Below are positions 26,872-34,167 of a stretch of DNA of 34,167 nt, in pieces. The translations under genes and the position numbers were made by a program. The stretch covers positions 1 to 34,167 of the forward strand of contig CDRNVI010000113.1 in NCBI GenBank assembly GCA_977017575.1. The letters run 5' to 3'. Position 1 is the first letter of the stretch. The number at the start of each line of letters is the position of its first letter. The stretch comes from Paramoeba atlantica (lineage: Eukaryota > Protista > Discosea). Under the pieces are notes generated by a model that made no database searches, was not told the DNA's origin, and saw nothing but the letters and a program-made list of their open reading frames with translations.

Positions 26872-28056
26872 GTGAATAAAATATTTAAAAAATAAAAACT
26901 TTTACAATTAATTTGGACCACAGCATCCAGCAGCTCATGGAGTTTTAAGATTAATATTAGAATTAAATGGTGAAATTATAGAAAAGAGCTGATCCTCATA
27001 TAGGATTATTACATAGAGGTACTGAAAAATTAATAGAATATAAGACTTTTATACAAGCTTTACCTTATTTTGATAGATTAGATTATGTATCTATGATGGC
27101 TCAAGAACATTGTTATTCATTAGCTGTAGAAACTTTAAGTTCTACTAATGTACCTATAAGAGCAAAGATGATACGTATGATTTTTGGTGAAATAACTAGA
27201 ATATTAAACAATATTTTAGGGTTAACTACACATGCGTTAGATGTTGGAGCGATGACACCTTTTTTATGACTTTTTGAAGAACGTGAAAAAATAATGGAAT
27301 TTTACGAAAGGGTATCAGGTGCTAGAATGCATGCAGCATATATAAGACCAGGAGGTATTAGTCAAGATATACCTATGTCTTTTTGTGATGATTTATATAA
27401 ATTTACACAAAATTTTATTAACTCTTTAATGGAAATGGAAGAATTATTAAATAGAAATAGAATATGAAAGCAACGTTTAGTTGATGTAGGTATATTAGAT
27501 TATAATCAAGCACAAACTTGAGGTTGTAGTGGAGTTATTTTAAGAGGATCTGGTATTCCTTGAGATATTAGAAAAAGTGAACCTTATGAATTATATAATG
27601 AAGTTGATTTTAAATCTTATATAGGAAATAAAGGTGATTGTTTTGATAGATTTTTAATTAGATTAAAAGAAATGCATGAGAGTTTAAAAATAATTTTACA
27701 ACTTTTAAATAATTTAAAAGAAGGTCCTATTTCAAATTACAATAATAAATTAACTATACCTTCAAGATCATTAATGAAGTTTTCTATGGAATCTTTAATA
27801 CATCATTTTAAATTATTTACAGAAGGTGTTAATATACCTTTTAATGATGTTTATAGATCTATAGAAGCTCCTAAAGGGGAATTTGGTGTTTTTTTAGTTT
27901 CGGGAGGATTAAATAGACCGGTAAGATGTAAGGATAAAAGCACCAGGGTTTAATCATTTACAATTATTAGATACATTATCAAAAGGACATATGATAGCCG
28001 ACGTTGTTACTATTATAGGTACTTTAGATATAGTTTTTGGGGAGGTTGATCGTTAA
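26872..28056 (+). CDS. nad7: NADH dehydrogenase subunit 7, GTG start, several 1-nt indels
   Basis: [62 protein letters not shown] and [12 protein letters not shown]. Confidence 0.96.
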
Positions 28057-28089
28057 TCAAATATTAATATAATATTAAATATTATATAT

Positions 28090-28543
28090 ATGCAAAAAAA
28101 ATTAAATCGATTTTTTAATTTAAGAATTAATTCTAGAGGTGCCGCTTTGAAAATTTAAATATAGGACCTAATTTAAGTCCTTATATGAATAGAGAGAAAA
28201 TCAAAGAATTTTGTAATGAATTTAATAAACAAACTTTTATATATAGATCGGAAGATTTATTAATATATGTTAGATTATTTTTATATACTGATAAATCATT
28301 TGTTTTTTTAATAAAAGGACCTTCTTTTAGTACTTTATTAAAATTGGTTTGAAATATTATGAGTTTAACTAATAAAAAATATTATGGAAAATTCAATTAC
28401 ATTAAGAAGTCTATATGATATTGTTATATGCGTAATTATTATTGATTTAAATATATAATAATTTAAATCAAAATTGAATAAAATTGCGATTTAAAAATAG
28501 TTTTTTTTCTATATCAAATTTACAAATTAATAAAATTATATAA
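28090..28543 (+). CDS. rpl11: Ribosomal protein L11, several indels
   Basis: IGPNL, KEFCNEFNKQT, YTDKSFVFLIKGPSFSTLLK and ITLRSLYDI. TAA at 28541-28543 gives an L11-like length. Confidence 0.75.
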
Positions 28544-28600
28544 AAAAATATGAATAATAATATTATAGCTTTTATGGTTGAATGGCTCATTAACCATAAT
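28544..28600. other. Junction between mitochondrial and bacterial sequence
   Basis: Abrupt change from extremely AT-rich code-4 organellar DNA to moderately AT-rich DNA with standard-code bacterial genes. Confidence 0.88.
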
Positions 28601-29684
28601 GTCATTGATTTATCTGCTATTGACGATAGAGATAATAATGCATTGCATATATTAGCTGAATGCCACGATTACCAACAGGATAACTATATAAAAAATAAAT
28701 TATCAGATATAGCTTTATTGTTACTTCAAAATTCAAGAGTAAACGTAAAAAAGAAATTTTACAAACAAAAACCAGTCAAATATCATTAATATTAGTATAC
28801 ACGCCCATATTACTCCATTACATACTGCTGTTAAAAATCGTTCACAAGGCTTAGCATCCATCCTGTTATCTCGCCCTGAAATAGATGTTAATCAAAGAAC
28901 TGGCTTTGATTACATGGCACTGCATATTGCCACATTAAATGGTGATCATAATATGGTGAATTTTTTACTTGCAAAAGGCGCTGAGGTAGACAGCCAAAAT
29001 CAATATAAATACGGACACGAAATTACTAGAGGGAAAACACCGTTGATGGTGGCTATAGTATCTAATGATCACAAGATGGTTGAATTATTACTCGAGAATG
29101 GCGCATCTACAAGCATGCAAGACAATACAGGAAGAAATGCACTATTTTATGCAATAGCAAGTGATTTCTGCTTAAAAGACCCAAATTAGCAAATTTAAAC
29201 GCATTAGAAATGGTAATAAAGAGCAAATTATGATGATAAACAAGTTAAAAACAGTAATAAACTAGATATAGTAACTTTGTTATTGAAACAACCTAATATT
29301 AGTATTAACTTACAAGATAATGATGGGAATACCCCATTAATGGATTTAATTAAAGCTATGTCGTATGAAATGACAGCAAATAACATAGTCATCTGCAAAC
29401 TATTACTCGAGCATGGAGCTGATGTAACAATCACAAATAAAGATGGTAAAACAGCACTATCCATGTTGAAATCACATAATGTCTCAGCAAAATGCACGCA
29501 GCAAAAAGAGCAGCTTCTCCAACTATTAGAACGAACTGAAAAACAAACCTTGGAAAAAACTGAATATCAGCAAAGTGTCATTGGTCAACTTAGTAATTCA
29601 CTTAGTAATCTATTTAGTAATAGTACCACGCTATCGTCTAACAAAAGTGGACCGTTATCTTTTATCTCACTATCACCACATTAA
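28550..29684 (+). CDS. Bacterial ankyrin-repeat protein, frameshifted into three ORFs, N-terminus probably missing
   Basis: Repeats DNNALHILAE, ITPLHTAV, MALHIATLNGDHNMVNFLLAKGAEVD, GKTPLMVAI...LLLENGAS, GRNALFYA, DGNTPLMDL...LLLEHGADV and DGKTAL. Confidence 0.9.
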
Positions 29685-29730
29685 TAATAGCAACACATTA
29701 GGGACTATTTACAATTCCGTTCTACAAGTC

Positions 29731-29761
29731 CATCATCCCGCGGTCAAGCTGTGGGATAACG
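29731..29761 (-). repeat. REP-like palindrome (CGTC-type family, CGTT variant)
   Basis: ATCCCGCGG-TCAAG-CTGTGGGAT stem-loop in the gap between convergent genes. The minus strand starts CGTTATCCCA. Confidence 0.7.
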
Positions 29762-29924
29762 AACCAGGAGGGAAATAGATAATTCAGTCTCTTTAAATTT
29801 CATAATGTTCATTGCAGTAAACCAATTCGTTTTAGCAAATTGTAAACAGCCTATAACAATTTATATTGTTTTCTTAACTCTTGAGTAATTAAGAGCTTAA
29901 AATAGCATGACTTTGAGTAAATAG

Positions 29925-30726
29925 TTATTCTTCATCCGATTTTGGTGACGCACTACTGCCTGCCAAAATACCTCCATCAATCGTTAATTCAATACCAGTT
30001 ATGTATTTCGATTCATCTGATCCTAAATACAGCACTGCATTAGCAACATCGATTGGTTCACCCATGTGACCTAATGGAATCCCGGCAGCAACATTAGCAA
30101 TAGCAGTCTCCCGGTTGTTAGGATCACCTAACATTGCATCCCAAATTGGAGTTAAGATTGCCCCCGGGTGCACTGAATTACACCGAATATGGTAACCGGC
30201 ATTCGCACAATATAAAGCAACTGATTTAGTATGATTACGCACGGCTGCTTTACTCGATGCATATGGCAGCAGCGCCTGGAATACCAACCAAACCAGAACG
30301 CGATGACATATTAATAATAGAGCCACCGTGTTGTTTCATTAAACTAATAGCATATTTACATCCTAAAAATACCCCGTCTAAATTCACTTGATGTACATAA
30401 TGCCATGCCTTTAAACTGGTATGCTCTGGATCTTGCAGACCTAAATTGTGATCAAAGCCGGTGATCCCAGCATTATTAAATACAATATCTAAGCGACCGT
30501 ATTGTTGCTTAATCGTCTGCATTACATCCTGCCAAGCTTGTTCATCAGTAACATCTAATCGATAAAACTGTGCACCAATGTCGTTAGCAGCTGCTTGACC
30601 TTCGTCGACTAAAATATCGGTGATAATGACAGTTGCACCTTCACGTGCAAATAACTCAGCTGTGGCTAAGCCAATGCCTCGACTGCCGCCGGTAATCAAT
30701 GTAACCTTGTCTTTAACCCGTGCCAT
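29925..30726 (-). CDS. Classical short-chain dehydrogenase/reductase (3alpha,20beta-HSD or cyclopentanol dehydrogenase-like), one frameshift
   Basis: TGGSRGIG, NNAG, NMSS, catalytic YASSK, IRCNSVHPG and ITGIELTIDGG; AAGGGG RBS upstream. Confidence 0.92.
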
Positions 30727-30762
30727 AAATCCCCTTACTTTACATCTTAAAATTACATTGAA

Positions 30763-33019
30763 TTAATCGATTATACTCACTGCTTCTACCCGTTGAAAAC
30801 CACGCGGTAGTTTGCTACCACGTTGGCCACGTTTACCATGATAATTGATTAAGTCTTTTGGTTTCAACGTTAGAGTACGTTTACCAGATTGAATCGCTAA
30901 ACTCTTTGTTTTATCCAATACCACGACATGCGCCATCAATTCATCGCGCTTGGCTGCACTGCTACTTGGAATATTCATGATCTTATTTCCTTTACCGCGC
31001 ACCAGCAAAGGTAACTCACTGGTTGCAAAGACTAACAAACGTCCTGTACTACTAATCGCTACAATCACTGTATTATCTAATTGGGTAACACTACATGGTG
31101 TTAGTGCTAATGTATTTGTCGGTGGCTTTAACACCGCCTTACCATTACGGTTTTTAGTGTGTAATTCACTTAACTGAGTCATGAATCCATAGCCTGCGTC
31201 TGATGCTAATAATGCGTAATGTTCTACTTCTCCAGATAATACCACCGATAAATTCAGCACCTTCTGCTAACTTGACGCGCCCAGTTAATGGCTCTCCTTG
31301 GCTACGCGCCGACGGCAAGCTGTGGGCAAGTATACTATAACTACGCCCACTGGTATCAATAAACAATGCTGCCTTGATTACTACGCCCTTTAGCGCTGGT
31401 TAAGAACCCATCACCGGCTCTATAACTTAATGTATTCGGATCAATATCGTGACCTTTGGCAGCACGCACCCAGCCTTTTTTAGATAGCACAATGGTGACT
31501 GCTTCATTGGGTAAGACATCTTGTTCACGTAATGCTTGCGGCTTGTCCACGTTCAACTAATGGCGAACGACGCTGATCACCATATTCTTTTACATCACTG
31601 GTGAGTTCTTTACGGATTAGGGTTTTTAAGCGACCTTCTGAACTAAGCGTTTGAGTTAAACTGTCACGTTCATCGGCCAGCTCACTTTGTTCACCTTTGA
31701 TCTTAATCTCTTCTAAACGAGCCAAATGGCGCAACTTTAAGTCTAAAATGGCTTCTGCCTGTAATTCAGATAATTTAAACCGTTTAATCAATTCAACCTT
31801 TGGTTTATCGGCCTCACGAATCAATTGGATCACTTCATCTATATTCAGGTACGCGATCAATAACCCATCTAAAATATGTAATCGTGCTTCTACCTTTTCC
31901 AAACGATATTGTAAGCGACGTTTTACTGTTTGTTTACGAAATGATAACCACTCTTTTAAAAATTCCAATAAACTAAAAACTTTGGGACGACCATCTAAGC
32001 CAATCATATTCAGATTAACGCGATAACTACGTTCTAAATCGGTTGGCAAACAAGTGCGCCATCAATTTATCTGCATCTACCTGTTAGACTTTAACGTAAT
32101 TAACAAACGGGTCGGATTTTCGTGATCAGACTCATCACGTTAAATCCGTTACCATTGGCAATTTCTTTGCACGCATTTGTTGCGCGATTTGTTCTAATAC
32201 TTTGGCACCAGAGACTTGATAAGGTAGGCGGTAATCACAATGTCGCTCTTTTCTTTGCTGTACACAGCACGTAACCGTACACTGCCATTTCCAGTGCGAT
32301 ACATTGTCATGATCTCTTGATGTGGTGTAATGATTTCAGCTGCGGTTGGAAAATCAGGACCTTTAATATGCTGACAAATATCGTCTAACGTTGCCCGCGG
32401 CGATTCTAATAAGTGAATACACGCACTGACTACTTCATTAATATGATGTGGTGGATGTCGGTTGCCATACCAACTGCCAATCCCAGTGGCACCTATTTAA
32501 TAATGCATTCGGTAAACGTGCTGGCAAATTAACTGGCTCTTGTAATGTTCCATCAAAGTTAGCTTGCCAATCAACCGTCACCCTGTCCTAATTCAGCTAA
32601 TAGTGTTTGCGCATACTTAGCTAAACGTGCTTCGGTATAACGCATTGCAGCAAATGATTTTGGATCGTCTGTTGAACCCCAGTTACCTTGACCATCTACT
32701 AATGGATAACGATAAGAAAATGCTTGTGCCATGTGCACCATCGCTTCATAACAGGCTGCATCACCGTGCGGATGGTATTTACTAATACATCCCCGATAGT
32801 GCGTGCAGACTTTTTGTATTTAGCACTGGCTTTTAAGCCTAATTCTGACATCGCATAAACGATGCGCCGTTGTACTGGTTTTAAACCATCACCTAAATGT
32901 GGTAAGGCACGATCTAAAATGACGTACATTGAATAATCGAGATAAGCTTTTTCAGTAAACACATGCAGCGGTGTTTGTTCAATGCCATCGGCATTAAATG
33001 TATTGGTGGTAATTGTCAT
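30763..33019 (-). CDS. parC: DNA topoisomerase IV subunit A, multiple frameshifts
   Basis: [78 protein letters not shown] and [12 protein letters not shown], in gammaproteobacterial ParC form. Confidence 0.96.
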
Positions 33020-33134
33020 AAACGTCAGATCCTCAGTAGATTAATTGCATTGTAACGCCATATTTAATTTTATCTAACAGGCCAAAATAAGTTTGCTTTC
33101 AAAAACACCTTAATAAAACCTTTGCATGTCGAGG

Positions 33135-33172
33135 CGTTATCCCAGAAGCCGTGGAACGGCTATCTGGGATCC
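33135..33172 (+). repeat. REP-like palindrome (CGTC-type family, CGTT variant)
   Basis: CGTT-ATCCCAGA-AGCCGT-GGA-ACGGCT-A-TCTGGGAT-CC, a 14-bp stem with one bulge, between divergent parC and fumC. Confidence 0.75.
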
Positions 33173-33289
33173 GAATAACCAATTAGTCATGCTATTGTAA
33201 TTAACATTAATCCTATCAGCAATATACGCTCTTCGTGTTTTAACTTGATTTCCCCCCAAAAAACACCGTATGATTAGCCCGCAGTTAAC

Positions 33290-33295
33290 GAGGGA
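33290..33295 (+). promoter_or_regulatory. Shine-Dalgarno site for fumC
   Basis: GAGGGA 6 nt upstream of the ATG at 33302. Confidence 0.65.
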
Positions 33296-33301
33296 TACAC
33301 T

Positions 33302-34167
33302 ATGAATGAGATCACATATCGCACTGAATCAGACAGTATGGGTGACATCCAAGTACCGAGCAACGCATATTGGGGTGCACAAACACAACGCTCTTTACAC
33401 CACTTTGCCATTGGTGATCCGCATGCTGACCGTATGCCACTAGCGGTTGTGCGTGCAATGGGTATTTTAAAACATGCTTGTGCACTGGCTAATAATAAAT
33501 TAGAAAAATTACCTAACGATAAAGCTGAATTAATCATTCAAGCAGCAACTGAAATATACCAAGGAAAGTTGGATGCACATTTTCCATTACGCATTTGGCA
33601 AACCGGTAGTGGTACTCAAACTAATATGAATACTAACGAAGTGATTGCTAACCGCGCCATTGAAATTACCGGTGGCACATTAGGTAGCAAAACGCCAATC
33701 CACCCAAATGATCATGTTAACATGTCACAATCATCCAATGATACCTTTCCAACAGCAATGTACATTGCTGCGGCAATTGGATTAACCCAAGAATTAATCC
33801 CTGCTGTTACCCAATTGCATGAAGCCTTAGCCACTAAAGCCGCTGCTTATCGTGATATTATTAAAATTGGACGTACTCATTTACAAGATGCCGTGCCGTT
33901 GAGTCTAGGCCAAGAATTTTCAGGGTATGTTGCACAATTAGAACATGCATTGGATGGTATTAAACACAGCTTAGATGGCTTATACCAATTGGCTATCGGT
34001 GGTACCGCGGTTGGTACTGGTTTAAACGCTCATCCAGAGTTTGCTACGTTAACTGCACAATACATTGCAGAATTGACTAAATTACCGTTACCTCTGCACC
34101 GAATAAGTTTGCAGCGTTAGCAGCACACGATGCCTTAGTGAGCGCCAGTGGCAGTTTAAAAACATTG
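33302..34167 (+). CDS. fumC: Class II fumarate hydratase, 3' end truncated by the window, 1-nt deletion near 34090
   Basis: [61 protein letters not shown] and [10 protein letters not shown]. After the shift it continues [16 protein letters not shown]. Confidence 0.97.

Follow-up and report, generated by a model that had tools for sequence, protein, structure and literature searches.

Mitochondrial DNA joined to a bacterial ankyrin gene in a Paramoeba atlantica contig is most probably a chimeric artefact

Introduction

Does a contig in which the mitochondrial DNA of a protist runs straight into a bacterial ankyrin gene record a transfer of DNA between organisms, or two separate molecules that were joined by accident? 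The question was raised by a stretch of 34,167 bases, hereafter the window, which is an entire contig (C113) of a 45.7-Mb, 248-contig protist assembly. The window has two parts, about 28.6 kb of AT-rich mitochondrial DNA (mtDNA) read with genetic code 4, and then 5.6 kb of gammaproteobacterial DNA. Taken at face value, it would represent a symbiont-to-mitochondrion transfer or bacterial genes in a protist genome, and finding it to be a chimera prevents a false claim of this kind. Contaminant or cobiont DNA in eukaryotic assemblies is a cause of false calls of horizontal transfer. Genuine insertions, both NUMTs and symbiont-to-host transfers, have two junctions, host flanks and read support at normal depth, and they usually show some divergence.

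Results and Discussion

The two parts of the window

The mitochondrial part of the window (1 to about 28.5 kb) had a GC content of 13-32%, and its GC skew was positive throughout. Over 28.4-28.9 kb the GC fraction climbed from about 0.13-0.19 to 0.27-0.39 and the skew flipped sign. Beyond about 28.6 kb, GC fractions of up to 0.35-0.42 were reached. A first-pass annotation of the window had described protist mtDNA fused directly to bacterial DNA, in frame with an ankyrin gene. The shift in GC and skew, and an open reading frame (ORF) at 28550-28789 that spans the change, confirmed that such a fusion is present in the contig. The window contained a single junction, and both contig ends and both native breakpoints lay mid-gene.

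The mitochondrial partner

The host mtDNA segment (1-28573, forward strand) had a GC content of about 20%, read TGA as Trp, and was 100% identical to other contigs over the part tested. It begins within cob, carries nad, atp and cox genes, 19 tRNAs, rnl, rns, nad9, nad7 and, last, rpl11, and is collinear with contigs C95, C112 and C114. The 1,074 bases 5' of the breakpoint matched at least 14 other contigs with 99-100% identity, and all of these matches ended at 28573. Past this position, each of the 11 contigs that we checked (C135, C129, C126, C125, C121, C120, C118, C112, C114, C95 and C221) continued as mtDNA. The native sequence there runs through a 126-codon ORF to rps12, rps7, rpl2 and the other genes of the ribosomal-protein cluster. 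When window 1-28573 was joined to C114 14419-25268, a mitochondrial circle of 39,423 bp with 19.7% GC resulted, which led back to cob at window position 1. The continuation of the mtDNA elsewhere and its closure to cob, which the first-pass annotation had named as a test, were thus both found. The window is without 10.85 kb of the organelle genome, its mitochondrial part breaking off mid-ORF. Besides the ribosomal-protein cluster, large orphan ORFs of 814 and 376 codons fall in the missing block.

An rpl11-like frame (28137-28466, forward strand; Ribosomal_L11_N, E 3e-6, below the Pfam cut-off) is the last mitochondrial gene to be complete ahead of the join, and it ends at a TAA (28464-28466) under code 4. 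Over 28091-28200, reading this gene through seems to take a +1 shift of frame near 28150-28160. Its ATG frame (MQKK...AALKI) hits a TAA, and the L11 motif (NIGPNLSPY...) resumes one base over. This stretch was identical in 11 contigs, which leaves either a homopolymer error common to them or a genuine frameshift.

Position and nature of the breakpoint

A three-way comparison of the window, the native mtDNA and the native bacterial locus placed the breakpoint at 28573/28574. On the mitochondrial side, it falls 8 codons into the next ORF after the rpl11-like frame. Alignment with C135, C129 and C121, together with the rebuilt circle, identified 28550-28573 (forward strand) as the first 8 codons (MNNNIIAF) of the 126-codon mitochondrial ORF, truncated by the join. 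On the bacterial side, the breakpoint lies at about codon 671 of a 1041-codon ankyrin gene, within an ankyrin repeat. The join had earlier been placed right after rpl11, at 28543-28549, and this has to be corrected because the MNNNIIAF codons belong to a genuine mitochondrial ORF in other contigs. The same annotation had let rpl11 stop at 28543, with an ATG 6 nt on. The ATG at 28550 is real, but the TAA at 28541-28543 shares its frame with the downstream ORF, the L11-like frame having already closed at 28464-28466. The bacterial part enters within an ankyrin repeat, as that annotation noted; an Ank repeat match at residues 656-681 of the native protein covers codon 671.

The ATG at 28550 starts a 79-codon ORF (28550-28789, translation table 11) that reads from mitochondrial into ankyrin-like sequence. 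The stop of this chimeric ORF is due to read errors in the tail, an A for T at 28786 that lies 3' of two positions, 28746 and 28766, where an A is missing. The 79-aa product had no exact match in a look-up, a result that says nothing either way because its end is set by a read error. The in-frame fusion to the ankyrin gene is a matter of chance, with 1-in-3 odds of a matching frame.

We looked for a tRNA, an IS, an integrase or a notable repeat at the join and detected none there, in agreement with the first reading. Nanopore and SMRTbell adapter motifs, which provide a weak test, were not found in the window. The native partners have about 1 nt (a T) in common at 28573/28574, which leaves a 1-nt ambiguity in the breakpoint position.

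These details bear on whether the assembler alone could have produced the join, its graph linking the mitochondrial path to a low-coverage bacterial read via AT-rich, low-complexity sequence, with no chimeric read involved. The join indeed sits in a T-run amid very AT-rich sequence, and the assembly contains many redundant, tangled mitochondrial contigs. However, the roughly 1-5 nt common to the native sequences at the breakpoint are too little for an overlap. The six joins described below, at six unrelated mitochondrial positions and one of them to a telomere end, are also better explained by chimeric molecules. We regard an error of the assembler alone as improbable.

The bacterial partner

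The bacterial tail (28574-34167) had no second copy in the 45.7-Mb assembly, apart from a 144-nt repeat. A word search with a 158-aa fragment of its SDR product led to a 266-aa protein (P0001) that was 100% identical. P0001 is encoded on a public contig of 2,447,832 bp (ena:ERZ24900291:ctg4025c; locus L111). It is encoded in a second sample as well, on a contig of 7,617 bp (ena:ERZ26859036; locus L112). Window 28573-34167 aligned to L111 12155-6562 at 99.57%, and to L112 equally well. Both loci pass the breakpoint as uninterrupted bacterial sequence, L112 extending 520 bp beyond it. The native locus has intact genes in the order fumC (469 aa), parC (751 aa), SDR (266 aa), ankyrin (1041 aa), alr, dnaB and rplI.

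The window retains the 3' third of the ankyrin-repeat protein gene (codons ~671-1041 of 1041; 28574-29684, forward strand), which aligned to L111 from 12155 downwards and had Ank matches in Pfam. This part carries four one-base indels and one substitution. The Ank_2 family was matched by the window pieces at E 2e-25 and by the native protein, which has multiple Ank repeats, at E 6.6e-75. The SDR-family oxidoreductase gene (29925-30726, reverse strand) is split in the window by one extra base at 30265. The gene for topoisomerase IV subunit A, parC (30763-33019, reverse strand), contains 13 one-base indels. A dispersed intergenic repeat of about 150 nt with a conserved hairpin core follows at 33052-33196 (forward strand). 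The class II fumarase gene fumC (33302-34167, forward strand) is represented by its 5' ~289 of 469 codons and ends at the contig edge, with one indel at 34087.

Compared with L111, the tail showed 24 differences in 5,595 nt, consisting of 23 one-base indels and one substitution, and 13 of the 24 were within parC. A frameshift-aware alignment of the window parC with a related ParC independently gave 13 frame changes; the corrected path was free of in-frame stops, and all 13 changes are explained by the one-base indels relative to L111. The mitochondrial part of the window was error-free against other contigs, the errors being confined to the bacterial tail. Such a pattern fits a lightly supported long read. 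We also considered the frameshifted parC, SDR and ankyrin genes as decaying pseudogenes. This was rejected, because the tail differs from the intact reference almost purely by one-base indels and the apparent frameshifts are therefore read errors rather than decay.

Other joins in the assembly

Seven mitochondrial contigs were compared in full; C115, C118, C120, C121, C125, C126, C127, C129 and C135 were compared at most as 4-kb loci. Six of the seven, the window included, proved to consist of two joined parts, and the mitochondrial position of the join differed in every case. In the window, mtDNA is left at 28573 (in the coordinates of the rebuilt circle, mt) for the bacterial ankyrin gene. 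C221 (8228/8229) holds a second join to what is probably the same bacterium, where mt 30561 adjoins a bacterial dnaA without about 30 N-terminal codons. In C95 (21778/21779), the partner at mt 7079 is DNA with a phage-tail-like ORF, and in C112 (3644/3645) mt 14207 meets a NACHT/HEAT ORF. C114 (11261/11262) joins mt 25415 to DNA of about 37% GC, and C210 (12586/12587) joins mt 27495 to about 73 TTTAGGG telomere units.

The telomere array of C210 (12062-12586, about 525 bp) has its G-strand running 5' to 3' toward the join, and mtDNA (mt 27495-28311) follows directly after it. Upstream of the array, copies of nuclear retroelements encode an integrase (rve) domain. C210 thus sets a natural chromosome end against mtDNA, and little other than an end-to-end union of two molecules would readily explain this. 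The TTTAGGG array corresponds to the telomere repeat of the host. In C221, the genes 3' of dnaA are recF, gyrB, a PP2C phosphatase and a B12-type ribonucleotide reductase, with recF and gyrB intact, and this bacterial part is a bacterial replication-origin region. We advise splitting or removing the small mitochondrial contigs of this assembly, namely C95, C112, C113, C114, C210 and C221 and probably further ones.

Origin of the join

Because both partners exist unbroken elsewhere and the same assembly contains other false joins, we conclude that the join in the window is an artefact, two separate molecules having been joined in library preparation, amplification or sequencing. We put the probability of this reading at roughly 90%. 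If the assembler-only variant is counted as well, an assembly or sequencing artefact is nearly certain. The first-pass annotation had ranked a chimeric read, an amplification (MDA) product or a misassembly first among its readings, and the unbroken native partners, the error-laden tail and the five other chimeras all support that ranking.

The artefact most likely arose as follows. A fragment of the very abundant host mtDNA would have been joined to a chromosome fragment of a co-sequenced gammaproteobacterium. The mtDNA was presumably by far the commonest molecule in the library, which would make it the likeliest partner in chance joins by ligation, amplification or pore reloading. A chimeric read that overlaps many true mitochondrial reads could then lead the assembler to extend a mitochondrial contig with it. 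The bacterial half would be left as an unpolished, poorly corrected tail, and the join would rest on one read or very few.

Contigs misbuilt on single long chimeric reads have been documented (PMC7500977). Like the window, the chimeric Canu nanopore contigs of Drechmeria coniospora in that report are two-part joins with no breakpoint signature, their true sequences occur elsewhere, and they are detectable by comparison with other contigs. The window differs from them in that its partners are organellar DNA and DNA of a different organism. The window also resembles the cases of false horizontal-transfer calls, as bacterial genes were filed under a eukaryote and a free-living source genome is available. 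Unlike in those contaminant cases, the contig physically links the bacterial piece to mtDNA, and this may explain its survival in the host assembly.

If the recombinant were real, a minority of molecules would have mtDNA inserted into the ankyrin gene of the bacterium, or bacterial DNA inserted into mtDNA. Host mtDNA would have recombined in a few cells with that of an intracellular, ankyrin-rich gammaproteobacterium, and the assembler would have caught one such molecule. The contig does exist, the host and the bacterium co-occur in four samples (see below), and ankyrin-rich bacteria are often intracellular. Like genuine NUMTs and symbiont insertions, the window brings DNA of two genetic compartments side by side; unlike them, it has no second junction, no host flanks and no divergence. 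A second or reciprocal junction with recipient flanks was sought and none was present in the assembly, and the one junction that exists bears no mobile-element or repeat signature. The comparison of empty sites also argues against integration, as the intact mtDNA is found in 11 assembly contigs and the intact bacterial locus in the two public contigs. Divergence after integration is missing on both sides, as the mitochondrial part matches the consensus at 100% and a single substitution separates the 5.6 kb of bacterial sequence from its reference. Moreover, the other random chimeras, including the telomere-mtDNA join, demonstrate that an artefact process was active in this assembly. We therefore consider recombination in vivo very improbable, even less likely than an error of the assembler alone.

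The two molecules could also lie together in the host nuclear genome, as a NUMT beside a transferred bacterial fragment. Nothing specific speaks for this, and the contig has no nuclear flank. Its 28.6 kb of mtDNA do not differ from the organelle consensus. Counted by substitutions, the bacterial piece has 99.98% identity to the free bacterial chromosome, and it is found nowhere else in the 45.7-Mb assembly. This is the least likely of the explanations, with hardly any probability left to it. Transfer between the symbiont and host mtDNA and insertion in the nucleus had been the second and third readings of the first-pass annotation. With the native partners intact and a single junction, neither gained support, and the chimeric artefact is the reading we retain.

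The bacterium and its possible tie to the host

The dispersed repeat of about 150 nt was found in the window (33052-33196), twice in L111 (3134-3296 and 7533-7676), in C221 (11819-11962) and in C223 (7093-7236). The copies were 81-88% identical to each other, and a 31-nt core was exact in the window, C221 and C223 copies. This core forms a GC-rich hairpin, although no significant RNA fold was obtained (z -1.1). The repeat looks like a REP- or MITE-like element. Because they have this repeat in common, the tail of the window, the tail of C221, C223 and L111 probably come from one bacterial genome. About 34 kb of that 2.45-Mb genome is present in the host assembly, in the two tails and C223. We conjecture that the bacterial DNA may persist there mainly where it is attached to mtDNA.

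Of the words of a 4-kb stretch made up equally of mitochondrial and bacterial DNA, 73-86% were present in four sequencing runs, which came from four samples of a single study (2023-2025). In a run from another organism and study, 46% of these words were present. As word shares drawn from both halves, these figures bear on the co-occurrence of host and bacterium rather than on the junction itself. Given an error rate of about 0.4-1% in the tail, 86% would be close to the ceiling expected if both halves are present. The recurrence of the bacterium with the host in four samples leaves a hint of a host associate, and the earlier side remark that even an artefact would point to a host-bacterium pair was reasonable. 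What remains is modest, a gammaproteobacterium with a public 2.45-Mb contig and large ankyrin proteins that is a candidate associate of the host in four samples. A literature search for Paramoeba together with Legionellales returned nothing relevant.

A Legionellales-like identity of the bacterial partner is plausible on protein similarity. The best match of fumC was a Legionellales MAG at 68% identity, with other phyla equally close. When close relatives were sought through fumC-related loci, none was found, the identities being at most 68% across mixed phyla, and these loci showed no synteny with parC. The full-length ParC was 65.5% identical to that of an unclassified Gammaproteobacteria MAG and 64.3% identical to that of a Coxiellaceae MAG, and a 174-aa piece of ParC was 62% identical to Legionella worsleiensis. 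Named matches of the SDR protein, at 64-69% identity, came from Legionellaceae, Legionellales, Gammaproteobacteria, Rickettsiaceae and Candidatus Amoebophilus. The nearest of them (P0025, P0036 and P0041; 68-69%) belong to Legionellaceae, Rickettsiaceae and Candidatus Amoebophilus, which are amoeba-associated lineages. This distribution hints that the SDR gene may move among intracellular bacteria.
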